Positions 1,926 to 63,332 of a stretch of DNA of 64,000 nucleotides are shown one piece after another (positions within the stretch are counted from its first letter, which is position 1; every line of letters begins with the position of its first letter). Below the pieces are notes generated by a model. It worked only from the letters and a program-made list of their open reading frames with translations. It was not told the DNA's origin and made no database searches. The position numbers and the translations under genes were made by a program. The DNA is taken from positions 124,001 through 188,000 of the IMG/VR virus record IMGVR_UViG_3300042484_002457. The stretch is one strand, 5' to 3'.

Positions 1926-3024
1926 GCCTGTGATTGATCCCAACAACAGGATCACATTCCTGTTGGATTGGGAACTCACAATGAAATGCAATCTGGATTG
2001 CAGCTATTGTGAAACTGGTATCTACGGTGGTCATGACAACAGCACACGACACCCGCCCAGGGCTGAGTGCTTGAAAACCATAGACTTTATGTTTGAGTAC
2101 GCTGATGCGTACATGAGCACCAAGCCCCAGGGCATTCGATATGTGATCCTGAATGTTTATGGCGGCGAAGCTTTGCACCATCCACACATTGTGGAAATTT
2201 TATCGGTGCTGCGATCTCGTCATGAGCAATACAAACAGCAATGGCATTTAACTGTTACCACAACTACCAATGCCATAATTGCGCCACACCGCTTGGACAA
2301 AATCATTCCTTTGATTGACGAGTTTACAGTAAGTTATCACACTGACAACACTCCTGAACAAAAACATCAATTTCAAGATAACTTGTTAAAAATCAAATCT
2401 GCGGGTGGTAGACTAAAGTGTGTGGTGCTCATGCATTCTGAGCCGGACAAGTTTGCCGATGCGCAAAACATGATTGAATGGCTAAAGAAAAATGATATCA
2501 AACATCTTCCGAGACAATTGGATCATGCAATTGAGCATGATTTCAACTACAATCAACAACAGGTAATTTGGTTTGAAAAACTCTACAACAAATCCCTGGA
2601 TCATGCTGTGGTACGAGACAACAAAATGGACCTGGCTGACACAGGTCGTGCCTGCTGCGGGGGCAGAAGTTTGTGTGCGGATCAAAATCGTCGAGACCCG
2701 CAAAAGTTTGTGTCAAACAAATTCCCAGGTTGGTACTGTAGTGTAAATCATTTCTTTTTGTATATCAAGCAAGTCAACGGCGAAGTCTACGTGAACAAAG
2801 ATTGCAAAATGAATTTTGATGGCACCGTGGGACCAATTGGGCATTTATCAAACACTCAGCCCATGATTGATCAGGCTCAAGATCATGATCGTCCTGTGAT
2901 ACAGTGTGCCAAACAACGCTGCTATTGTGGACTTTGTGCACCCAAGGCAGCAGATCTAGATACATATAACCACATAATGAAAAAATATGAGATACCTAAT
3001 TCTAACCTACGTGACCAGGCCTAA
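1903..3024 (+). CDS. radical SAM protein with Cys-rich C-terminus
   Basis: CNLDCSYC (CxxxCxxC), YGGEA, TTTNA; C-terminal CYCGLC. Confidence 0.85.
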   Translation: MNLATSLEPVIDPNNRITFLLDWELTMKCNLDCSYCETGIYGGHDNSTRHPPRAECLKTIDFMFEYADAYMSTKPQGIRYVILNVYGGEALHHPHIVEILSVLRSRHEQYKQQWHLTVTTTTNAIIAPHRLDKIIPLIDEFTVSYHTDNTPEQKHQFQDNLLKIKSAGGRLKCVVLMHSEPDKFADAQNMIEWLKKNDIKHLPRQLDHAIEHDFNYNQQQVIWFEKLYNKSLDHAVVRDNKMDLADTGRACCGGRSLCADQNRRDPQKFVSNKFPGWYCSVNHFFLYIKQVNGEVYVNKDCKMNFDGTVGPIGHLSNTQPMIDQAQDHDRPVIQCAKQRCYCGLCAPKAADLDTYNHIMKKYEIPNSNLRDQA

Positions 3025-52941: not shown

Positions 52942-54156
52942 ATGCGAAAGTTAATTTATATGGGACTCGAACAACTGGAGTCAAGATACACACTACAGCT
53001 AACTGAGTGGAATCGACGGGTATTTGATCGTCGAGGGCTCGATGTTGTCTATGTCCCTGGGCTAAACATTGATAATACTAAACAGATTTCTGTTGGACAA
53101 GTTTTAGATGCTCATGGTCGAAGTTATTTTTCTATGAGCCAGATGATGAACTTAGTTCAGATGATGCGTAATGGAGAAATTACAAACGAAGATGTAGTGT
53201 ATTTCGAGGACATGTTTACTCCTGGCTTCGAAAGTCTTGGTTACATCATGAATCAGATTCCCCGCGAGCAGTGCCCACGCATCTATGTTCGCTGTCTAGC
53301 ACAAGCTATTGATCCTGATGACTTTGTGCATGTTTGGGGCATGGCTCGATGGATGAACTTGTATGAACAAATGGTCAATGAGATGGTGGTTTTCTCGGGG
53401 GGTGCAGTATTGGCAACCAATGAGGAAATGGTCGCGCACATGCGCATCGCTGGATGGACTGCTCCAATCTACAACATTTCTGGGTTGGCATTTGGAAAAA
53501 CAGAAGTACTGGAGCGGATCGGTGGGAAAGAAAACATCCGGCCGTTTGATTCGCGTCCGCGGAGGGTGGGTTTCGCAGCTAGGTTCGACCAAGAGAAACA
53601 GCCTGGTTTTTTCATGGACCTTATTGAAATGTACGGTGAGCTCACCAATGAACCATGTGAGTTTGCAATTTTCAGTGGGGGGCCACTCAGGTCTAATAAT
53701 CCAGAGTACGTGGAGAGAGCCCGCCGCATGGAATCCAAAGGCAAACTCCAGATTTACGAAAATCTAAACAAGAATCAGTATTATGATTTACTTAACAATA
53801 CTCGTGTTCTCTTTAATTGTGCTCTTCAAGACTGGGTATCTAACACTGTATCCGAAGCCGACACTGTGGGGTGCAATGTTCTTTACCCTGCATATCGTAG
53901 CTTTCCTGAAACTTTTGCAAATGATCCTAACCGACTATATGTTCCTTGGAGCATAGATGACGCTTATCATAAGATACAAAATTTATTGCGAGAACCGCAT
54001 CACAACATGGGTCTCATCTCGGATTGGAACAACGCCACTATTGACCGTATTGTTGATATTATTACTGGTCGAGGTGAGCAATGGAATCGGGCGGGCAATC
54101 GATATCGTGACCACGTTGCTCACGAAAAATATCAAGTTGTAAAGATTGAGGAATGA
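52942..54156 (+). CDS. GT-B fold glycosyltransferase
   Basis: ARFDQEKQPGFF, NTVSEADTVGCNVLYPAYRSFPE (GT4-like C-terminal domain). Confidence 0.75.
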   Translation: MRKLIYMGLEQLESRYTLQLTEWNRRVFDRRGLDVVYVPGLNIDNTKQISVGQVLDAHGRSYFSMSQMMNLVQMMRNGEITNEDVVYFEDMFTPGFESLGYIMNQIPREQCPRIYVRCLAQAIDPDDFVHVWGMARWMNLYEQMVNEMVVFSGGAVLATNEEMVAHMRIAGWTAPIYNISGLAFGKTEVLERIGGKENIRPFDSRPRRVGFAARFDQEKQPGFFMDLIEMYGELTNEPCEFAIFSGGPLRSNNPEYVERARRMESKGKLQIYENLNKNQYYDLLNNTRVLFNCALQDWVSNTVSEADTVGCNVLYPAYRSFPETFANDPNRLYVPWSIDDAYHKIQNLLREPHHNMGLISDWNNATIDRIVDIITGRGEQWNRAGNRYRDHVAHEKYQVVKIEE

Positions 54157-55097
54157 GCACCGTAGTTGTAACAGGAGCTTCTGGATATATTGGAGGGCAA
54201 TGTGCTCTCCAATTGCACGATGCTGGCCACCAGGTGGTTGGCATTGATCGCAGGCCGCTGCCTTTGCAGTTGAAGGGCATGATACAGTTTGTGCAGGCTG
54301 ACTTTGACAGTGACGAGTCGTTTAGAAAAATCATTGAGCTAAGACCCAGTGCCATAATTCACTGTGCCGGTACTAGTCTTGTGGGACCAAGCATCCGGCA
54401 TCCATCAGACTACTACAACAACAACGTGGTCAAGACCTTGCACCTGTTGGGTATAATTGTGTCAGCTGTGCCCCGGACTAGATTTATTTTTAGTAGCAGT
54501 GCAGCCACATACGGAGTTCCCGCAGCCAGCTTGCCCTGCCAAGAAACTGATGCGCTAAAGCCTATCAGTCCATACGGTGAAAGCAAGCAGATGGTAGAAC
54601 AAATCCTTAAATCATACCATCGTGCTTACAATTTAGACTATGTGGCATTTCGTTATTTCAATGCTTGCGGGGCTGATCCACAACAACGACATGGGCAAGA
54701 GCCTGGTGCCACACACATTATTGCTCGTGTGCTAGAAAGCATTAGAGACCAACAGGAGTTTACGTTGTATGGTAACGATTACGATACACGAGACGGGACT
54801 TGTGTTCGCGACTATGTTCATGTTGGTGATATTGCGCAGGCACATGTTGCAGCCCTGTCTAATAAAATTCCTGCGGGCATCTACAATCTCGGATCTAGCA
54901 CTGGAACCAGCAACCAAGAAATAATTGCTGCGGCTGAACGTATCACTGGGCAAAAGGTCCAGCTGCATCACAGTGCTAGGCGCGAGGGTGATCCTGACGT
55001 GTTAGTAGCTGATGCTGCTCGGTTTAATCAGCTGGTACACTGGCAACGTTTTGATCTAGATCACATGATTCAACATGCATGGAACTGGTATGTTTGA
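54153..55097 (+). CDS. galE: UDP-glucose 4-epimerase
   Basis: VTGASGYIG, FSSSAATYG, PYGESK, FRYFNACGA, RDYVHV. Confidence 0.92.
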   Translation: MSTVVVTGASGYIGGQCALQLHDAGHQVVGIDRRPLPLQLKGMIQFVQADFDSDESFRKIIELRPSAIIHCAGTSLVGPSIRHPSDYYNNNVVKTLHLLGIIVSAVPRTRFIFSSSAATYGVPAASLPCQETDALKPISPYGESKQMVEQILKSYHRAYNLDYVAFRYFNACGADPQQRHGQEPGATHIIARVLESIRDQQEFTLYGNDYDTRDGTCVRDYVHVGDIAQAHVAALSNKIPAGIYNLGSSTGTSNQEIIAAAERITGQKVQLHHSARREGDPDVLVADAARFNQLVHWQRFDLDHMIQHAWNWYV

Positions 55098-55677
55098 TAA
55101 AATTTTAAAATTTGAACAAGAGCTAGCAGAGTTTACAGGTGCGCCCTATGCCATCATGACTGACTGCTGCACTCATGCCATAGAATTGTGCCTGCGTCAT
55201 GAACGAGTGCAAGAAGTTGTAATGACTCCTTACACCTACTTGAGCATTCCTATGACCATGCACAAGTTGGACATTCGTTACTACTATCGAGAAGAAGAGT
55301 GGACTGGAGAATATCAGTTTCATGGCACACGCATCTGGGATTCAGCACGTAGACTGGAACCCAACATGTATCGAACTGGACAAATGCAATGCTTGAGTTT
55401 TGGGCATGACAAGCCTTTACACATAGGCCGTGGTGGTGCTATACTACTAGATAACGAGTCAGCATATCGTCGACTAATTCGTATGAGGTACGATGGTCGC
55501 GATCTAAATATATCGCCCTGGGCAACACAAAAGGAATTTGAGGTTGGATATCATTACAAGCCCACTCCCGAAGAAGCTGTGCAAGGACTTGCACAGCTGG
55601 AAGGTTTGCGTGAGTTTTGTGCTCCTCCGCGAGCAGTTGTGTATCCAGATTTAAGAACCATCACTATCAAGAACTAA
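55090..55677 (+). CDS. short DegT/DnrJ/EryC1/StrS-like aminotransferase
   Basis: FEQELAEFTG, CTHAIELCL, LSFGHDKPLHIGRGGAI; lacks the usual C-terminal domain. Confidence 0.7.
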   Translation: MFDKILKFEQELAEFTGAPYAIMTDCCTHAIELCLRHERVQEVVMTPYTYLSIPMTMHKLDIRYYYREEEWTGEYQFHGTRIWDSARRLEPNMYRTGQMQCLSFGHDKPLHIGRGGAILLDNESAYRRLIRMRYDGRDLNISPWATQKEFEVGYHYKPTPEEAVQGLAQLEGLREFCAPPRAVVYPDLRTITIKN

Positions 55678-55678
55678 T

Positions 55679-56380
55679 ATGACAGATACAAGCAAACACC
55701 TATCACAAGCAATCCGCGAGCGTATGAAATCCGACGGCAAGAGATTCTGGGCCGGGGACAACATTAGTGAATACATCAAACCAGAAGAACGCAGACTGCT
55801 AATCGACGAGGCTGCAGAAGCATTTGAAGTAGTACTGGACCGACTACTGATTGATCGAGAAACAGATCCCAACTCAAAGGGCACAGCCCGTAGGTTGGCC
55901 AAAATGTACTACAATGAAATAATGGCAGGTAGATATGAACAAGCACCAGATGCAACAGCATTTCCAAACGATTCGCAGGACCGCTACGAAGGTATGCTCG
56001 TGGTTCGCAGTGAACTTCGTAGTATGTGTAGTCATCATCACCAACCCGTTGCTGGGGTTGCTTATATTGGCATTATTGCGGCAGAGAAATTAATTGGCCT
56101 CAGCAAGTACACCCGAATCGCACAGTGGTGCGCCCGCCGTGGTACACTACAAGAAGAACTATGTAATGACATTGCTCGCGAGATTAGCAAGGCTACTGAA
56201 TCAGAAAACGTAGCAGTATATGTGCAGGCAATTCATGGTTGTTGTGAGAATCGTGGTATTATGGCTCACAGTAGTCTTACACAGACCACAGTTCTTAGAG
56301 GCGCTTTCAAAGAAGATCAAAGTGTCAAGAAAGAGTTCTTTGACAACATCAAGTTGCAGCAGGACTTTGCACCACGTTAA
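55679..56380 (+). CDS. folE: GTP cyclohydrolase I
   Basis: TARRLAKMY, SMCSHHHQP, IGLSKYTRI, LQEEL, HGCCENRG. Confidence 0.93.
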   Translation: MTDTSKHLSQAIRERMKSDGKRFWAGDNISEYIKPEERRLLIDEAAEAFEVVLDRLLIDRETDPNSKGTARRLAKMYYNEIMAGRYEQAPDATAFPNDSQDRYEGMLVVRSELRSMCSHHHQPVAGVAYIGIIAAEKLIGLSKYTRIAQWCARRGTLQEELCNDIAREISKATESENVAVYVQAIHGCCENRGIMAHSSLTQTTVLRGAFKEDQSVKKEFFDNIKLQQDFAPR

Positions 56381-56422
56381 ATTTATCTAACTAAATATAA
56401 TTTCAATCAAGATGATACACTA

Positions 56423-57241
56423 ATGTTTTTAGCGTTAGAACAAGATTTACCCAACAATAAAATTATTCCATTGCCCCAGTTTAACAATCAAGTCAGCATT
56501 GTTAACACTGAGCAATACCGCCTTATATCCAACATTTGTCCGCATCAGAACTCCAAAATTGCAAAATCTGCTACGGAGCATTTGCGCTGCCCTTATCATG
56601 GCATGACATTTGACTGTCAGGGCAAAGGTACCAACAACAACTATGAATTGAAAACATGGGACACCTATCGAACACAGACCATGTTGTTTGATAAGCCTGT
56701 TGACCATTTTCCAATTGCAACGCATAACATGACCTTGGTTGAACATCGACAAGATTATGTGAATGCATCAACGCACGTTATCATGGATGTGTTTCTTGAT
56801 ATTGATCATATACCTGTTGCGCATCAAGGTGTATATGACCAGGTGGGTATTCATAGCGTGGACAATGTATCGTGGACCATATTTGAGAATGGAAGCATAC
56901 AATATGTACCAGCACAAGATACTGATCACATACTTGAGTCAGACAAGATCTACAATCTTGGTGCAGTATGGATGGCTGTTTATCCCGGTAGCATGATTGA
57001 GTGGCAGCCTGGTGCATTGTTTGTAACCGTTGCATGCAAACGCGGTTTGGGCAGTGCTGTACAAGTCTACAAGTATCGGGATACCAGGTACGATCAGAAC
57101 AGTTGGGATCTTAATGAACAAGTATGGGAACTGGCTTGGTCACAAGATCGAGCACTGGCAGAAGGTATCTGCTTGCTGGCAGAAAACAACCTAGACGATT
57201 TAAAAAAACATTACAGAAACTGGATCAATCATGCTGTGTAA
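56423..57241 (+). CDS. Rieske 2Fe-2S oxygenase-like protein
   Basis: NICPHQ...RCPYHGMTF; mononuclear iron motif DIDHIPVAH. Confidence 0.85.
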   Translation: MFLALEQDLPNNKIIPLPQFNNQVSIVNTEQYRLISNICPHQNSKIAKSATEHLRCPYHGMTFDCQGKGTNNNYELKTWDTYRTQTMLFDKPVDHFPIATHNMTLVEHRQDYVNASTHVIMDVFLDIDHIPVAHQGVYDQVGIHSVDNVSWTIFENGSIQYVPAQDTDHILESDKIYNLGAVWMAVYPGSMIEWQPGALFVTVACKRGLGSAVQVYKYRDTRYDQNSWDLNEQVWELAWSQDRALAEGICLLAENNLDDLKKHYRNWINHAV

Positions 57242-58094
57242 AGATAACTGGATTGAGATGTCCTGGGACGGATTGCCTGCTAGACAAGGTCCTGAGAACC
57301 TGTCAGTCAATATCAATCGCAAGGCCAAAGAGCTTTTGCCCTTTGACACTGCTTGCAGTCGCGTAGCAGAAGAAATATATAGCACACATAAAAATTTATA
57401 CATTGCCATGAGTGGCGGCAGTGACAGTGAAAACGTTGCCAACACGTTTTTACGCATGGGTATTCCGTTTACCCCAATCATGATAACATACGATGTAACT
57501 CGCCACAATGATCAAAAATTAGAAATGTGGTGGGCGCAACAATGGTGCAAAAAACACAACATAGAACCTCTTGTAGTTGATGTGGGTAATTATGCCAACA
57601 GTAAAACAGAAAAACAATATACTTCAATTGTTAAACCGCGACTTGGCAATGGCACAGTAACTCATGGACTAATCTTAGACACTGTACAACAACTAAACGG
57701 GCATATAGTATCTGGTTTCCAACTTGAATACTATCCTGACCACGAACAGATGGAATACCTAACACCAGTGCTGGGAAACTACAATGGCTTTGTAATGGAA
57801 GAAGCTGACCTCTATGTAGAAACCTTGGTGCCAAATCAACATCCCTGGGCGTTTTATTATTGGAACGCCGAAGTCATGGCCAGTTTTGTGTCAGAGTGGG
57901 ATACTAATCTTACTATGCAGGAAAACAAAGCCAAAATTTACGGCACTGTGCATAGACCAAAATTTGTTTACCATCAAGATGTGTTTGAACCAACCATTAA
58001 AAAAATTCGAGACCGATGTAAACAGCATTGGGGAACCAGAGATTGTGCATTGTTGGGCTCTAGAGAACAACTACTTGCACAATTACTTGGGTAA
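57231..58094 (+). CDS. PP-loop (adenine nucleotide alpha hydrolase-like) protein
   Basis: IAMSGGSDSE. Confidence 0.55.
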   Translation: MLCKDNWIEMSWDGLPARQGPENLSVNINRKAKELLPFDTACSRVAEEIYSTHKNLYIAMSGGSDSENVANTFLRMGIPFTPIMITYDVTRHNDQKLEMWWAQQWCKKHNIEPLVVDVGNYANSKTEKQYTSIVKPRLGNGTVTHGLILDTVQQLNGHIVSGFQLEYYPDHEQMEYLTPVLGNYNGFVMEEADLYVETLVPNQHPWAFYYWNAEVMASFVSEWDTNLTMQENKAKIYGTVHRPKFVYHQDVFEPTIKKIRDRCKQHWGTRDCALLGSREQLLAQLLG

Positions 58095-58106
58095 ATAGTT
58101 CTTTAC

Positions 58107-58170
58107 AGCGGTCTTCGGTCATCATCCCGCTATACAAACTCTGCTGCCTATGCTACAATAACATAGGAGA
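58107..58170 (+). promoter_or_regulatory. preQ1-I-like riboswitch candidate plus an RBS-occluding hairpin
   Basis: AGCGG/CCGCT stem, loop ending CATC, tail ATACAAAC; CCTATG/CATAGG hairpin overlaps the GGAG of queD. Confidence 0.5.
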
Positions 58171-58175
58171 ATAAC

Positions 58176-58673
58176 ATGCAACCAGTAGTTTACAAATACA
58201 CAAGTACTAAAGAATATCACGATGCGTTTCCGTGTGCTTATCGACAATGGCGGGCCGACAGCCATTGCAATCTAATTCACGGATACAGCTTCTCAATGAA
58301 GTTCTATTTTGGCACCAACGATCTTGATGTTCGCAATTGGGCAGCTGATTACGGTGGCCTCAAGGAACTAAAGAAAATATTAGAAGACCAATTTGATCAT
58401 ACACTGATCGTGGCACAAGATGACCCTGAACTAGAAACCTTCAAGCTTTTACAAGAGCGCAAGATGGCCAAGATTGTTGTGTTGCCAAAGCTGGGCTGCG
58501 AAGGACTGGCTGACCAACTGTACAAGTTTGTGAACGGCATCTATATTCCTGAAAACTGGGGACCTGGAGAAGCCGAACGCTTGTGGTGCTATCGTGTGGA
58601 AGTTCGCGAAACACAGGCAAACATGGCTTTCCGTGAAGGCCACCGTGAATGGAACGAAGATTTATTTGCCTAA
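58176..58673 (+). CDS. queD: 6-carboxy-5,6,7,8-tetrahydropterin synthase
   Basis: HCNLIHGYS, DYGGLK, FDHTL, GCEGLA, VEVRET. Confidence 0.88.
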   Translation: MQPVVYKYTSTKEYHDAFPCAYRQWRADSHCNLIHGYSFSMKFYFGTNDLDVRNWAADYGGLKELKKILEDQFDHTLIVAQDDPELETFKLLQERKMAKIVVLPKLGCEGLADQLYKFVNGIYIPENWGPGEAERLWCYRVEVRETQANMAFREGHREWNEDLFA

Positions 58674-58674
58674 T

Positions 58675-59529
58675 ATGGAACAAACAGTACAAGAACCCAA
58701 ATTTGACATTGCAATATTGCTGGCCACACGTGGTCGCACAGACTCGGTAAGTCGCAGTATTCGCAGCCTAGTTGACCTTGCTGACAACATCAAAAGTGTA
58801 CAAATCATGTTTGCTTTTGACAAGGATGACAGTGTGGGCCCGTCACACTTTTTGACAGACATCAAACCCATGTTGGATCAGGCTGGTGTATCATACACTG
58901 CCATGAACTTTGAACCCATGGGTTATGTGAACTTGCACAAGTACAACAATGCCATGGCCGCAAGGACCAACAGCCGATGGTTGGTTATCTGGAATGACGA
59001 CGCTGTGATGCAGACCAAGGGCTGGGACAGCAAGATCATGGGTTATCATGAGCAATTCAAGTTGCTGGCATTTCGCACACACAATCTGCATCCGTATAGT
59101 ATTTTTCCAATTGTGCCAAGAAAGTGGTATGACTTGTTGGGTTACATCAGTCCGCACCCCACACAGGATGGTTGGGTAAGTCAACAAGCATATCTGTTGG
59201 ACATATATGAGCGCATTGACGTAGATGTATTGCACGACCGCTATGACTTGACTGGCAACAACAACGACGAAACATTCCGCAATCGCCCCATGCTAGAAGG
59301 CAAACCCAACGATCCCAATGATTTTCACAGTGAGAACATGATTGATTTACGGCACCGTGATGCTGCAAAACTGGCTACATGGATGCGGGGACAAAGTATC
59401 AGTACCAAGTTCTTTGAAGCGGTGTTTGCCGGAACACAAGACCCCTGGGAAAAACTAGCCCAGAACGATGTGAATCAGTTAATGGTACAATTTGCCAACC
59501 CACACAAGCACTTCTCTGACAGTAAATAA
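58675..59529 (+). CDS. GT-A fold (family 2-like) glycosyltransferase
   Basis: ILLATRGR, FDKDD, IWNDDA; start reassigned to ATG 58675. Confidence 0.7.
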   Translation: MEQTVQEPKFDIAILLATRGRTDSVSRSIRSLVDLADNIKSVQIMFAFDKDDSVGPSHFLTDIKPMLDQAGVSYTAMNFEPMGYVNLHKYNNAMAARTNSRWLVIWNDDAVMQTKGWDSKIMGYHEQFKLLAFRTHNLHPYSIFPIVPRKWYDLLGYISPHPTQDGWVSQQAYLLDIYERIDVDVLHDRYDLTGNNNDETFRNRPMLEGKPNDPNDFHSENMIDLRHRDAAKLATWMRGQSISTKFFEAVFAGTQDPWEKLAQNDVNQLMVQFANPHKHFSDSK

Positions 59530-59532
59530 CAA

Positions 59533-61533
59533 ATGAAAAACAAAATTGCCTGGGTTCAACCCAACTTTCAGCAAGGTCCCAAAGAGTTTAATGCTTATTA
59601 TCTTCCTTACTCTGCAGGTGTAGTATGGAGTTACAGTCTAGCTGATCCAGCCATACGTGAACGATTTGAAGCCACTGACTGGATCTGGCGCCGAGATGCA
59701 CTGGAGCCAACAGCACAACGCCTGGCACTCAATAACATTGTGACTTTCAGTACCTATGTATGGAATCACCGCTATAACTATGAGTTGGCCCGCCGAATCA
59801 AAGAAATCAATCCCACGGTATTGACTGTGTTCGGGGGTCCTGAGCCGGCAATAACTGACCCAGATCTGTTTCGCAAAGAACCTTTCATGGACCTGGTGAT
59901 CTGTTACGAAGGCGAAATCACATTCAAAAGAGTGCTGGAACACTTTGAAACTGCTGACTGGGAATCGGTGCCAGGACTGTTGATCAATCGCAACGGTGAG
60001 GCTGTGAAAACCCAAGACGCTGAACGTATTGAAAGTCTTGAGCAGGTAGCTAGTCCTTACTTGTCGGGCATATTTGATCAAATGATGGCGGACCATCCTG
60101 AAGTAACATGGCAAGGCACCCTGGAAACCAATCGTGGTTGTCCGTTTGCCTGTACTTTTTGTGACTGGGGTAGTCTAACTTACAACAAGGTCAAGCAGTT
60201 TGAACTCACTCGAGTGTTCCACGAACTTGAATGGATGGCCCAACGCAACTTCGATTGGATCTCAATCACCGATGCCAACTTTGGCATGTTTCCCGAACGT
60301 GATGGCATGATTGCAGACAAGATCATTGAGATGCAGGAAAAGTACGGATCACCGCGCACCTTCTCAGTGGCCTGGGCCAAGAATCAAAAGAAGGAAGTGA
60401 TTGACATTGTGAAAAAACTGCTGGATGCTCGAGGCTTCAATCAAGGTCTCACGCTGAGTGTACAGAGTCTTGACTTGGATGTGCTGGAAAATATTCGCAG
60501 AAAAAACATGGAAATGAACAAACTAAACGAAGTGTTTGAACTGTGTGATCAACGCAATATTCCTGCCTATACCGAGCTGATCCTTGGCTTGCCCGGGGAA
60601 ACGTTAGAGACCTGGAAGAAAAATTTCTATGCATTGTATGATCTAAATCAGCACACTGGTATCACTGTGTTCCAAGCCCAGCTGTTGGAAAATGCTGAGA
60701 TGAATCTACTACAGAAAAAACTGTTCAAGATCACTAGCCAACCAGTTACCGATTACTTTGCTGGCTCATACAGTGTGGAACACATTGAAGAAAGCATTGA
60801 CGTTATAACTGGCACCAAAGACATGCCCACCCCTGTGATGTTGGATGCACAGATTTTTTCGTGGTTCCAAACTACTATGCACATCAATGGATTTGCTACT
60901 ATAGTGGCCAGGTTTATCAACAAGTATCTAGGCATCAGTTACCACAACTACTATGAAGACCTGTTTGCATATGCCATGACTCATGACTGGTTGAAGAAAG
61001 AAGCAGACGAAGCTAGAACGTATTTTTCTAACTGGATGGATACTGGCCGGATCAACCATCCCAAGATTGGTGTGGAGATTCATGGTTGGAACATCATACA
61101 TCGTACATCAATGAACATGCACCAAGAAGACCGTGTGGATGACTTGTATGATTTCTTGGAAACTTTCTTAGAGCGTTACAACTTGCCCAAAAATCTATTA
61201 GCCAGCCTCATGCGTCTCCAACGCAGTTACTACATCAAGTATGATGACAGAAATGCCTATCCCATGAATTTGACTCTAGACTATAATATTTGGGAATACC
61301 TCAGTTTTAACCGACCCTTGGTCAATGAACCCACAGTGTATCGTTTGGATTTTCCTGAAGACAAGACCATGAGCCTCAATAGATTTTTGGAATTGTTTTA
61401 TTTTGCTCGACGTCGCAACTTTGGCAAAGCCACAGTTGATTTAGTAGGCAAAGTTGACAGCAAAGCAAGTCAGCGCGGCAAAGGTGCTGCCAAGGCACAA
61501 GGTTCATTCTCAATCAAACAACTAGCAGCCTAA
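59533..61533 (+). CDS. B12-binding domain radical SAM protein
   Basis: FSTYVWN, FGGPE, EGE, ETNRGCPFACTFCDWG, DANFG, ELILGLPGET. Confidence 0.9.
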   Translation: MKNKIAWVQPNFQQGPKEFNAYYLPYSAGVVWSYSLADPAIRERFEATDWIWRRDALEPTAQRLALNNIVTFSTYVWNHRYNYELARRIKEINPTVLTVFGGPEPAITDPDLFRKEPFMDLVICYEGEITFKRVLEHFETADWESVPGLLINRNGEAVKTQDAERIESLEQVASPYLSGIFDQMMADHPEVTWQGTLETNRGCPFACTFCDWGSLTYNKVKQFELTRVFHELEWMAQRNFDWISITDANFGMFPERDGMIADKIIEMQEKYGSPRTFSVAWAKNQKKEVIDIVKKLLDARGFNQGLTLSVQSLDLDVLENIRRKNMEMNKLNEVFELCDQRNIPAYTELILGLPGETLETWKKNFYALYDLNQHTGITVFQAQLLENAEMNLLQKKLFKITSQPVTDYFAGSYSVEHIEESIDVITGTKDMPTPVMLDAQIFSWFQTTMHINGFATIVARFINKYLGISYHNYYEDLFAYAMTHDWLKKEADEARTYFSNWMDTGRINHPKIGVEIHGWNIIHRTSMNMHQEDRVDDLYDFLETFLERYNLPKNLLASLMRLQRSYYIKYDDRNAYPMNLTLDYNIWEYLSFNRPLVNEPTVYRLDFPEDKTMSLNRFLELFYFARRRNFGKATVDLVGKVDSKASQRGKGAAKAQGSFSIKQLAA

Positions 61534-62213
61534 TGAAGAGACTGTTCACTTTTGGGTGTAGCTTCACTAACTACAGATGGAGCACCTGGGCTGACTGTCT
61601 AGCACCCGAATTTGACTACTTTGAAAATTGGGGTCAGAGCGGCGGTGGCAACGGCTATATCATGAACTCAGTGATGGAAGCCGATCAACGCAATCGATTT
61701 GGTCCAAATGACACTGTGGTTGTGTGCTGGACCAGTCACACGCGAGATGATCGATATGCCAATCGAAAGTGGCAGACTTTGGGAAATATTTTTACTTGCC
61801 CCATATACGATCCTGCGTATTTGAAAACTCATGTTGATGATCGTGGTTACATGATACGTGATCTTGCGTATGTCAAGGCTGTAAAAACTTTATTGGAATC
61901 TCGGCCTGGACTGACCTGGAGATTTATCAGCATGACCACCTGGGGGTCAGTATCATTTTATAGTGACGCTGTTGAGCTGTATAAAGATTGTGTTGATATT
62001 ATTTCCAAAGGCTACGATCAAGTGCTTTACCCCAACGGCTGGCCCAATCGAGAAGATCCACACCCTAGCCCTGCTGAGCATTTGGCCTATTTGGATGCAG
62101 TATTGCCTGGTTGGGTTACAAAACAATCTACTCGTGTTATAATGCATGATGAAAGCGTCAATCTAAATAAAGATCCCCGTAAGTCGGGTATGGCAAAAGT
62201 AACAAGACTATGA
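61533..62213 (+). CDS. SGNH-like protein
   Basis: FGCSFT, GQSGGGN, DPHPSPAEH. Confidence 0.55.
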   Translation: MKRLFTFGCSFTNYRWSTWADCLAPEFDYFENWGQSGGGNGYIMNSVMEADQRNRFGPNDTVVVCWTSHTRDDRYANRKWQTLGNIFTCPIYDPAYLKTHVDDRGYMIRDLAYVKAVKTLLESRPGLTWRFISMTTWGSVSFYSDAVELYKDCVDIISKGYDQVLYPNGWPNREDPHPSPAEHLAYLDAVLPGWVTKQSTRVIMHDESVNLNKDPRKSGMAKVTRL

Positions 62214-62485
62214 CACCACAACACAAAGAGATTCTAGATATCACACAAGAAGAGTGTGCTGAGGTAATTGTTGCCGTCAGCAAAATTAACCGTTTTGGTC
62301 TAGACAATGTCAAGCCTGGCAAACCATTGACCAATAGGCAACACCTGGCAGAAGAACTAGGGGACTTGCAGGCCATGATTGATTTGTGCACTGACTTCGA
62401 CCTTGTGAGTCGCGAGGAGGTGCTTGCTGCTGCCAGCAACAAGATTACCAAACTAAAACAGTGGTCAAACATTTTTAAGGACTAA
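62210..62485 (+). CDS. MazG-like NTP pyrophosphohydrolase
   Basis: QEECAEV...LAEELGDL. Confidence 0.8.
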   Translation: MTPQHKEILDITQEECAEVIVAVSKINRFGLDNVKPGKPLTNRQHLAEELGDLQAMIDLCTDFDLVSREEVLAAASNKITKLKQWSNIFKD

Positions 62486-62486
62486 C

Positions 62487-63332
62487 ATGAAATTAAAAGT
62501 AAGTGAACTATTTTATTCTGCACAAGGCGAAGGCCGCTATGTAGGCGTTCCTTCAATTTTCCTCCGCACATTTGGTTGTAACTTCACCTGTTCAGGCTTT
62601 GGTTGTAAGCCTGGAGAAAAAAGCACAGGTGCTGACGAAGTTGCCAAGACTGTGCATTTATACAAGACTTTTGAAGAACTGCCATTAGTAGATACTGGCT
62701 GCGACAGCTATGCTAGTTGGCATCCAGACTTCAAACATCTAAGCCCCACATACACTCCTGAAGAACTTGTGGAAAAGATGGCAGCATTGTTGCCTAACAA
62801 TAACTGGCAACAACCCAACGGCAACCCTGTACACTTGGTTATCACTGGTGGCGAGCCATTGCTGGGCTGGCAGCGAGCATATCCTGAGTTGTTGGACCTG
62901 TTGCACGAACGTGGTTTGCGACACATTACATTTGAAACCAATGGTACTCAAGAACTCACACGTGACTTCAAACAGTATCTGGCAAACTGGCACGGTGAGA
63001 TCACATTCTCAGTAAGCCCCAAGCTGAGTGTATCAGGTGAGACTTGGGCAGATGCAATCAAGCCAGATATTGTATGGGATTACGAAACACATGGCATCAC
63101 TTACTTGAAGTTTGTGGTAGACAAGATTGAAGACTTCGACGAGCTGGATCGTGCTGTGGATGAGTATCGACTGCGTGGTTTCAGTGGCCCCGTGTTCGTG
63201 ATGCCAGTGGGCGGTGTGGTTAGCGTATATGACAGCAATAGAATTCATGTTGCAGACGAAGCACTCAAACGCGGTTACTGGTATACCCCAAGATTGCATG
63301 TGGATCTTTGGGGCAATGGCTGGGGGAAATAA
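62487..63332 (+). CDS. queE: 7-carboxy-7-deazaguanine synthase (radical SAM)
   Basis: SELFYSAQGEG, FLRTFGCNFTC...GCDS, VITGGEPLL, FETNGT, SVSPKL, PRLHVDLW. Confidence 0.9.
   Translation: MKLKVSELFYSAQGEGRYVGVPSIFLRTFGCNFTCSGFGCKPGEKSTGADEVAKTVHLYKTFEELPLVDTGCDSYASWHPDFKHLSPTYTPEELVEKMAALLPNNNWQQPNGNPVHLVITGGEPLLGWQRAYPELLDLLHERGLRHITFETNGTQELTRDFKQYLANWHGEITFSVSPKLSVSGETWADAIKPDIVWDYETHGITYLKFVVDKIEDFDELDRAVDEYRLRGFSGPVFVMPVGGVVSVYDSNRIHVADEALKRGYWYTPRLHVDLWGNGWGK

Follow-up and report, generated by a model that had tools for sequence, protein, structure and literature searches.

The 64,000-nt stretch of the 209-kb IMG/VR record IMGVR_UViG_3300042484_002457 that we analysed (hereafter the window) belongs to an uncultured lake-water phage and encodes a queD-like gene at positions 58176-58673 on the plus strand. 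Its 165-residue product is a member of the PTPS/QueD family (Pfam PF01242, 4e-14; phrog_2389, 8e-36). An earlier note, made from the sequence alone, had described a preQ1-I-like riboswitch candidate in front of this gene, consisting of a TAAATA promoter, a 5-bp stem, a 15-nt loop (58112-58126), an A-rich tail (ATACAAAC, 58132-58139) and a hairpin overlapping the Shine-Dalgarno sequence (SD). All of these elements are present where the note placed them, and its observation is confirmed. What the note missed is that the loop pairs with positions 58142-58148 to form a pseudoknot, and that the SD hairpin competes with this pairing. The region is organized as follows:

58092..58097 (+), TAAATA, a promoter-like element of the T4-late type (consensus TATAAATA), 9 nt before P1 and overlapping the TAA stop codon of the upstream ORF
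58107..58111 (+), 5' strand of helix P1 (AGCGG), paired with 58127-58131
58112..58116 (+), loop L1 (UCUUC)
58117..58121 (+), 5' strand of helix P2b (GGUCA, with U58119 bulged)
58122..58122 (+), conserved U opposite the conserved C58144, an internal mismatch separating P2a from P2b
58123..58124 (+), 5' strand of helix P2a (CA)
58125..58126 (+), loop L2 (UC), with C58126 directly 5' of the P1 3' strand
58127..58131 (+), 3' strand of P1 (CCGCU)
58131..58159 (+), sigma70-like site inside the leader (TATACA, 17 nt, TACAAT, with TG at 58151-58152); the -35 overlaps L3 and the -10 lies in the hairpin loop
58132..58141 (+), loop L3 (AUACAAACUC), the A-rich tail
58142..58148 (+), 3' strand of P2: U58142 and G58143 (P2a), C58144 (mismatch) and UGCC 58145-58148 (P2b)
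58147..58167 (+), anti-SD hairpin CCUAUG (58147-58152)/CAUAGG (58162-58167), which shares C58147 and C58148 with P2b and pairs them with G58166 and G58167 of the SD
58166..58178 (+), SD (GGAG, 58166-58169) and queD start codon (58176-58178)
58176..58673 (+), queD-like gene, the putative regulated gene

Taken alone, the leader does not fold better than chance (minimum free energy -15.1 kcal/mol against -13.05 +/- 2.81 for shuffled sequences, z = -0.73), and we did not use single-sequence thermodynamics as evidence. The evidence that the element is real comes from its conservation, with compensatory base changes, in more than a hundred related phage contigs. A covariance model found one copy upstream of queD in 77 of 80 IMG/VR loci retrieved by their QueD protein. 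Two of the remaining three are cut off before the leader, so that the motif is present in 77 of 78 loci with enough upstream sequence. In the window there is a single hit, at 58104-58154 (49.9 bits, E = 2.5e-9). In a pattern scan, 182 of 184 ORFs following the motif are QueD homologs, with identities of 31-100%, and the three apparent exceptions have queD 0.4-1 kb further on.

The 15-nt loop is not a plain loop, since its 3' part pairs with the sequence just after the A-rich tail, giving an H-type pseudoknot with a P1 of 5 bp and a P2 of 2 plus 4-7 bp around the conserved U/C mismatch. A MAFFT alignment of all aptamers put P2b in inconsistent registers, and we therefore replaced it with a seed restricted to the 5-nt P2b class and with alignments guided by the covariance model. 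In these, 94.6-95.7% of cells are paired, compared to 30-52% when the partners are slid, 7 of 12 pairs show double changes, and none of 500 shuffles reaches the observed score. In P1 about 99% of cells are paired. The top two pairs are G-C in every sequence, while 3 of the 5 pairs show compensatory changes (A-U/U-A; G-C/C-G/U-A; C-G/A-U/U-A), and these states are scattered over the QueD tree, with 18, 11 and 18 changes. In P2b, the pairs are G58117-C58148, G58118-C58147, C58120-G58146 and A58121-U58145, and covariation is seen across classes, for example GGCA/UGCC, GGCU/AGCC, GGCG/CGCC, GGUG/CACC, GACAA/UUGUC and GACGC/GUGUC. In P2a, which consists of C58123-G58143 and A58124-U58142, the A-U pair becomes G-C in 5 distinct sequences (loop ..CGUC together with tail ..CCGC) and is never unpaired. 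A permutation test of duplex energies showed that cognate P2 strands pair better than non-cognate ones (z = -9.6, 0 of 5000 permutations).

Unpaired nucleotides at the helix junction are also invariant, as in aptamers. The L1 consensus is N-C-U-U plus 0-5 variable nt. Its first nucleotide is C, U or A in roughly 39%, 38% and 23% of 124 unique aptamers, its second position is an invariant C, and the following U is near-invariant. L2 is UC in 98, CC in 18 and AC in 8 of these 124 aptamers, so that C58126 is invariant and preceded by U in 79%. Both U58122 and C58144 are invariant in the protein-retrieved sample. In L3, A58134, A58136, A58138, U58140 and C58141 are invariant, with the invariant adenines alternating with variable positions.

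The 3' strand of P2 is shared with the translation start. In 147 of 148 unique leaders the nested minimum free energy fold pairs at least 2 nt of this strand with the SD or AUG, and blocking it costs a median of 4.5 kcal/mol; in the window the stability of the platform falls from -6.6 to -1.6 kcal/mol. The window has the anti-SD hairpin of platform class A, while the other platform classes pair the same strand with the start-codon region, so that three different designs keep this arrangement. The coupling is only partial in silico, as predicted pairing of SD and AUG falls on average from 4.3 to 3.0 of 7 nt when P2 is formed, and within a class the start-codon helices vary only by wobble-compatible single changes.

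Promoter-like elements precede the knot. TAARTA and/or a -10-like hexamer lies within 30 nt upstream of P1 in 132 of 148 unique leaders; TAARTA most often ends 5-9 nt before P1, and sigma70-type -10 hexamers peak 7 nt before it. In L201, TTGACA-16-TGTATAAT ends 7 nt before P1. The promoter function, and with it the predicted transcript 5' end, is inferred from sequence. The only RNA run examined contained short contigs of relatives and gave no 5' ends.

The occurrence of the motif appears to be restricted to phages. A strict pattern scan of 185,579 species genomes found it only on three short MAG contigs. The motif is found only in uncultured phages and is absent from GenBank phages. The cultured relatives ACP17, Phosso, X1 and R5C have no leader or no motif, and blastn of the leader against GenBank phages gave only chance matches. 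The motif is abundant in lake viromes, with more than 600 copies in IMG/VR and metagenomes, and full-text literature searches found no description of it.

We next compared the element with the preQ1 riboswitches. A search with the Rfam covariance models had been named beforehand as a test of the riboswitch reading. No Rfam 15 model, including those of preQ1-I (RF00522), preQ1-II (RF01054) and preQ1-III (RF02680), gave a hit at the gathering threshold in the window or in 20 varied loci. At E≤10, searches of two short stretches (57950-58300 of the window and 2880-3020 of the locus L033) gave no preQ1 hit either. Only chance-level hits appeared in these searches (Mu-gpT-DE at 12.5 bits, Chloroflexi-1 and emrB-Lactobacillus). 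Known riboswitches, small ribozymes and phage RNA families are therefore excluded as far as those models reach. While preQ1-II and preQ1-III adopt HLout pseudoknot folds, the fold found here is a plain H-type pseudoknot of about 45 nt. On the other hand, several core features match preQ1-I, especially type I, as reviewed in PMC11625349: the H-type topology with P2 formed between the hairpin loop and the sequence after L3, a 5-bp P1 with a conserved G-C closing pair, which in preQ1-I is the floor of the pocket, an invariant cytosine at the position of the specificity base, mostly preceded by U (the type I signature; A in types II and III), and location in the leader of a queuosine/7-deazaguanine gene, with putative control of translation initiation. 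L3 is A-rich with three invariant adenines, although contacts to the ligand edge and the P1 minor groove could be proposed here only by analogy. There are clear differences. P2 is 6-9 bp with a conserved mismatch instead of 3-4 bp, L2 is 2 nt instead of about 5-6 nt, L3 is 10 nt, and the uridine at the start of L1 that reads N9 of the ligand in preQ1-I is not conserved. Moreover, in preQ1-I the SD, or a terminator, is part of or next to P2 and ligand represses, whereas here the SD lies outside the aptamer, 18 nt after P2, and P2 contains the anti-SD or anti-AUG strand, so that the predicted logic is inverted relative to known preQ1 switches.

Other small H-type pseudoknot riboswitches (SAM-II, SAM-V, SAM/SAH, guanidine-III and fluoride) also combine loop-helix tertiary contacts with action on the ribosome-binding site, but they show no sequence or covariance-model similarity to the element, their gene context is different, and their SD lies in or next to the knot helix. 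In ON-type translational riboswitches such as the adenine (add) riboswitch, the ligand-stabilised aptamer captures a strand that would otherwise sequester the SD or start codon, as inferred here only from the strand sharing, but the fold is a three-way junction. The T4 gene 32 leader pseudoknot and the T4 RBS-sequestering hairpins with internal late promoters (gene e) resemble our leader in combining, in a T4-superfamily phage, a pseudoknot at the mRNA 5' end, an RBS hairpin and a possible second promoter inside the hairpin. Those elements are operated by a protein or by promoter choice rather than by a metabolite, share no sequence with the motif and are not linked to queD.

We interpret the element as a phage-specific cis-regulatory RNA at the 5' end of the queD mRNA, with a preQ1-I-like core in which L3 probably lies along P1. 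Because the P2 3' strand is also the strand that otherwise pairs with the SD or start codon, there are two mutually exclusive folds: in one the sequestering helix forms and translation would be off, in the other the knot forms and the ribosome site should be free. We hypothesize that a small planar ligand with a guanine-like edge, namely a 7-deazaguanine- or pterin-pathway compound or guanine itself, stacks between P1 and P2, pairs with the invariant C and locks the knot, which would make this a translational ON riboswitch for the first committed enzyme of the FolE-QueD-QueE pathway. The fold, its covariation, its exclusive link to queD and the sharing of a strand with the SD/AUG helix are established by our analysis, and together with the invariant junction nucleotides they agree with what is expected of a riboswitch leader, whereas ligand binding, the nature of the ligand, the resulting effect on expression and the direction of the switch are inferences. 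We consider this model about as likely as not. An ON switch on a biosynthetic gene is unusual, and no obvious inducer is known. We read the element as a preQ1-I-like variant or a new riboswitch candidate. A bolder possibility, which we put forward only tentatively, is a riboswitch class found only in viruses, a preQ1-I-like pseudoknot rewired into an ON switch that senses a guanine-faced metabolite of the 7-deazapurine/pterin branch point (for example the FolE product dihydroneopterin triphosphate, CPH4, CDG, preQ0 or guanine) and licenses QueD during late infection.

The interpretation given in the earlier note, that a preQ1-I-like switch, perhaps with specificity shifted by a longer loop, feedback-controls 7-deazaguanine precursor synthesis for DNA modification, is only partly supported. 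A conserved structured leader tied to queD, directly after a promoter-like element and with preQ1-I-like topology, is borne out. However, the long loop is one strand of P2 rather than an enlarged loop, and stabilising the knot should activate rather than repress, so simple end-product feedback does not fit the anatomy. Given also the lack of a covariance-model match, a divergent preQ1-I member binding preQ1 or preQ0 and repressing queD appears unlikely. As to DNA modification, this purpose remains a proposal: FolE, QueD and QueE are present, but tblastn with phage Iggy and R5C proteins found neither DpdA nor canonical QueC in the window or in the fetched flanks of about 200 loci, although distant DpdA types could have been missed.

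A pseudoknot that binds no ligand is possible but less likely than our model. It could be the target of a phage or host protein, as in T4 gene 32 autoregulation or with a RegA-type repressor, a 5'-terminal structure protecting the mRNA from decay, or a folding timer that sets how much queD is translated from the long transcript. The phage belongs to the T4 superfamily by its DNA polymerase, T4-like phages use leader pseudoknots and RBS-sequestering hairpins, the motif sits at the predicted transcript 5' end, and it has no known ligand and no match to a riboswitch family. Nevertheless, L2, L3 and mismatch nucleotides are invariant across QueD proteins diverged to 31% identity, the near-isoenergetic two-state design is typical of metabolite aptamers, and a protein partner would have to be conserved in all these phages, with none evident next to the motif. 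It is very unlikely that the conservation reflects only DNA-level signals, that is, overlapping promoters. A sigma70-like TWTACA-17/18-TGnTAnnnT is embedded in 81 of 84 class A leaders and may be a second promoter yielding an unregulated transcript, and promoter-like hexamers lie just upstream. But promoters do not need complementary double substitutions, classes B and C lack the internal site yet keep the knot, and the -35-like hexamer is simply the conserved L3.

Riboswitches carried by phages are few, and those known are copies of bacterial classes, whereas this motif appears to be phage-only and is tied to one enzyme. If it binds a ligand, it would be either a fourth architecture for 7-deazaguanine sensing or a sensor for a new pathway intermediate, with inverted logic. 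It would also give a handle on how large T4-superfamily phages time an unusual FolE-QueD-QueE pathway, which sits here beside Rieske, PP-loop, B12-radical-SAM and sugar-modifying enzymes. The small size of the aptamer makes it easy to test biochemically, and it could serve as a compact regulatory part.

Alternative structures and roles were also considered. A small hairpin inside the loop (GNC...GNC) is not maintained across variants and was dropped in favour of P2. A pairing of the P1 5' strand with CUGCUG, seen in the minimum free energy fold of the window, is not conserved in AGAGG-type relatives. A role as frameshift or stop-readthrough stimulator for the upstream ORF was rejected because the upstream genes differ between loci while the motif stays with queD.

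The leader of queD reads as the earlier note had described it, and that observation held in every element. The elements lie in the window as follows:

58092-58097, TAAATA, overlapping the stop codon of the upstream ORF
58107-58111 and 58127-58131, the two strands (AGCGG and CCGCT) of the stem
58112-58126, the 15-nt loop
from 58132, the A-rich tail
58147-58152 and 58162-58167, the two strands (CCTATG and CATAGG) of the hairpin
58166-58169, the GGAG Shine-Dalgarno (SD) sequence
58176, the ATG of queD
58176-58673, the ORF that follows, which encodes a QueD-like PTPS protein

Taken alone, the leader is not special (MFE z = -0.73). No Rfam 15 family reaches its gathering score anywhere in the window, and no preQ1 model appears even at E<=10 in a 351-nt stretch. 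The SD hairpin (58146-58178) gives a weak, sub-threshold match to the Rfam Mu-gpT-DE motif (12.5 bits against a gathering score of 49, E = 3.6); because the shared part is a hairpin ending in AGGAGA followed by ACAUG, this is probably generic similarity between ribosome-binding sites.

To find relatives, we performed a protein-based scan of IMG/VR with the QueD sequence and examined the best 80 of at least 596 relatives. Nucleotide similarity to the window starts at about 58092-58107, and in all but the closest relatives the upstream gene is not alignable. A covariance model (CM) finds exactly one copy, on the queD strand and upstream of queD, in 77 of these 80 loci. Two of the other three are cut off before the leader, while one (L080) truly lacks it. 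The window has a single hit, 58104-58154, at 49.9 bits. A second retrieval was based on RNA, using a degenerate pattern over loop L2, the first helix P1 and loop L3, and yielded at least 120 further viral stretches. Of 100 sources searched (the window plus 99 of those stretches), 95 carry the full motif. Across both sets there are 189 instances and about 146 unique leaders, and of 184 ORFs that follow the motif, 182 are QueD homologs at 31-100% identity to the window protein. In the apparent exceptions, the relatives L140, L153 and L195, queD lies 0.4-1 kb further downstream, with an extra ORF or insertion between the motif and queD (a 113-aa ORF in L140 and a 243-aa ORF in L153), and the putative switch would there control a small operon rather than queD alone.

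The stem recognized in the earlier note is helix P1. It is 5 bp long and always closed by two G-C pairs, with compensatory changes at the other three positions: AGCGG/CCGCU, AGAGG/CCUCU, AGUGG/CCACU, ACCGG/CCGGU, AUCGG/CCGAU and UGCGG/CCGCA. The 15-nt loop, on the other hand, is not a passive loop, as its 3′ part pairs with the sequence right after the tail to form a second helix, P2. In the window, P2 consists of the pairs C58123-G58143 and A58124-U58142 (P2a), a conserved U58122 opposite C58144, and then A58121-U58145, C58120-G58146, G58118-C58147 and G58117-C58148, with U58119 bulged (P2b). P2b varies freely but in step, for example GGCA/UGCC, GGCU/AGCC, GGCG/CGCC, GGUG/CACC, GGCAU/AUGCC, GACGC/GUGUC, GACAA/UUGUC and ACG(N)CAU/AUGUCGU. 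P2a changes from CA/UG to CG/CG in five distinct sequences and is never unpaired.

Covariation was counted on three alignments: a MAFFT seed, a CM alignment of the pattern-retrieved set, and a CM alignment of the protein-retrieved set, which is unbiased with respect to the RNA. Between 93.7 and 95.7% of cells are standard pairs, compared to 29-52% when the 3′ partners are slid by 1-3 columns. Changes on both sides are seen in 6-7 of 12 pairs, and 0 of 500 shuffles reach the observed covariation score. The CM alignments lean towards the modelled P2, but the MAFFT seed alignment agrees with them, as does an alignment-free test in which the duplex energy of each loop with its own 3′ strand was compared to that with the 3′ strands of other sequences (z = -9.6, with 0 of 5000 permutations as good). 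On a FastTree of the downstream QueD proteins, the three variable P1 pairs need 18, 11 and 18 state changes, numbers that are probably inflated by tree error and recombination; the compensated states are therefore not single inherited events.

Conserved unpaired nucleotides cluster at the junction of the two helices. Loop L1 starts with N-C-U. L2 is 2 nt long and ends in an invariant C (UC in 98, CC in 18 and AC in 8 of 124). L3 is 10 nt long, with three invariant adenines at alternate positions followed by UC, and the U/C mismatch inside P2 is invariant. Because the pattern-retrieved set fixes part of L3 by construction, statements on conservation rest on the protein-retrieved set.

The 3′ strand of P2 has a second partner. 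In the window, C58147 and C58148 pair either with G58118 and G58117 (P2b) or with G58167 and G58166, the first two bases of the SD, in the hairpin described in the earlier note. Three platform designs exist. Class A (84 unique leaders, including the window) has this anti-SD hairpin. Class B (41) pairs GYCRUC, which overlaps the end of P2, with GAUGGC, the start codon plus the next two bases, and class C (21) pairs GYCAUUG with CAAUGGC. Within a class the 5′ strand varies only in wobble-compatible ways, because the 3′ strand is fixed by the AUG and the second codon, while between classes B and C the pair at position -1 of the AUG switches from C-G to U-A. With P1 enforced and no pseudoknot allowed, the MFE pairs at least 2 nt of the P2 3′ strand with the SD or AUG in 147 of 148 unique leaders. 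Forbidding that strand from pairing, as if P2 were formed, costs the platform a median 4.5 kcal/mol (-8.7 to -4.2), and at least 3 kcal/mol in 116 of 148, while the median P2 duplex energy is -6.0 kcal/mol; these energies ignore pseudoknot loop penalties and tertiary contacts. The two folds are thus roughly balanced and mutually exclusive, which is the anatomy of a switch. Because the knot captures the anti-SD strand rather than the SD, stabilising the knot should open the ribosome site.

We compared the motif to the preQ1-I class, which is defined as an H-type pseudoknot whose ligand stacks between P1 and P2 (PMC11625349). A strictly conserved C just before the P1 3′ strand pairs with the ligand and is preceded by U in type I or A in types II and III; the G-C closing pair of P1 forms the floor, a U at the start of L1 and an adenine of the A-rich L3 read the other edge, and SD nucleotides are buried in P2 (PMC11625349). 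The topology, the C, its UC or AC context, the G-C floor and, at the level of sequence, the A-rich L3 are all seen in the queD leaders. The CM score, the L1 U, the short P2 and long L2, and the inclusion of the SD in P2 are not. Therefore, we do not file the motif as a member of RF00522. It is best described as a preQ1-I-like pseudoknot with an extended P2 and an inverted platform, and may be a distant offshoot of that class or an independent invention. The interpretation in the earlier note, a preQ1-I-like riboswitch by which the phage feedback-controls 7-deazaguanine precursor synthesis for DNA modification, is thus supported only in part.

We hypothesize, at roughly even confidence, that the element is a ligand-stabilised pseudoknot that turns queD translation on. 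While the fold, its covariation and the strand shared with the SD or AUG helix come out of the sequence analysis itself, the binding of a ligand, its identity and the direction of the switch are inferred. In this view the ligand would be a planar compound with a guanine-like edge that pairs with C58126. For an ON switch, precursors or signals make more sense than the end product, and candidates are the FolE product, guanine nucleobases or nucleotides, and pathway intermediates. If the ligand proves to be preQ0 or preQ1, then either the logic is positive feedback or our reading of the platform is wrong. A true preQ1-I repressor appears unlikely. A ligand-free pseudoknot used by a protein, for mRNA stability or as a folding timer is somewhat less improbable, though still doubtful, whereas conservation of promoters only is very unlikely, as the compensatory changes argue against it.

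Promoter-like elements precede the motif. TAARTA and/or a -10-like hexamer lies within 30 nt upstream of P1 in 132 of 148 leaders; sigma70-type -10 hexamers peak 7 nt before P1, and TAARTA most often ends 5-9 nt before it. The copy L201, from a contig binned into a Bacteroidota MAG, shows TTGACA-16-TGTATAAT ending 7 nt before P1. The phage DNA polymerase is of the T4 type and is closest to the Phosso, Atu_ph07 and Rak2-like jumbo phages at 43-52% identity, which fits use of a T4-late-type TATAAATA promoter. The RNA should therefore start 0-3 nt before P1, a position that is inferred, as the only RNA run holds fragmentary contigs of relatives. In the window, ATAAATA is not enriched overall (7 found, 7.5 expected). 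However, four of the seven copies (4194, 11601, 26261 and 44717) sit 28-92 nt upstream of an ORF start in the matching orientation, consistent with use as a late promoter core.

In class A only, the L3 sequence and the hairpin loop together read TWTACA-17/18-TGnTAnnnT (81 of 84 leaders), a pattern that is absent from classes B and C. In the window this sigma70-like promoter (58131-58159, TATACA-17-TGnTACAAT) has its -10 in the loop of the anti-SD hairpin. It may be an internal promoter whose transcript would begin inside the 3′ half of the hairpin and escape control, an arrangement that resembles that of T4 gene e.

The motif lies in an unusual que cluster (54153-63332). Around it the window encodes FolE (55679-56380), a Rieske protein, a PP-loop ATPase-like protein with an SGGSDS motif (57231-58094), QueD, a glycosyltransferase-like protein, a 666-aa B12-binding radical SAM methyltransferase-like protein, a MazG-like protein and a QueE-like protein (62487-63332), and just upstream an NAD-dependent epimerase/dehydratase and a DegT-type aminotransferase. 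In the pattern-retrieved sample of 113 loci, QueD is present in 112, FolE in 45 and QueE in 43 of the roughly 10-kb pieces. A tblastn search with phage Iggy DpdA and QueC and with R5C QueC found nothing in the window or in the fetched flanks of the relatives' loci. The pathway to 7-carboxy-7-deazaguanine is supported, whereas its use for DNA modification, which the earlier note had proposed, is not. The cluster could be a pathway to an undescribed 7-deazapurine derivative. The QueD-like proteins of the window and its relatives carry SHCxxxHGY where canonical QueD has CxxxHGH, and some relatives (for example L019, L034, L051 and L076) have N-terminal extensions of 20-35 residues between the motif-proximal AUG and the conserved core.

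A strict pattern scan of one genome for each of 185,579 bacterial and archaeal species gave five hits, of which three are true copies (L201, L203 and L205). All three lie on 5-6 kb contigs binned into Bacteroidota MAGs (an uncultured Bacteroidetes bin and a Crocinitomicaceae bin) and are probably phage fragments. This could hint at the host or be a binning artefact, and the TTGACA/TATAAT-type promoters next to the motif do not look like Bacteroidota promoters. GenBank phages hold no copy, and literature searches found no description of the motif. The window itself recurs in at least 24 lake-water metagenome runs. In one lake-water DNA run (X1), the summed contig depth over the leader (58086-58193) is 176-250, compared to about 50 in the flanking genes, and many co-occurring relatives match the leader at 85% or more but not the neighbouring coding sequence.
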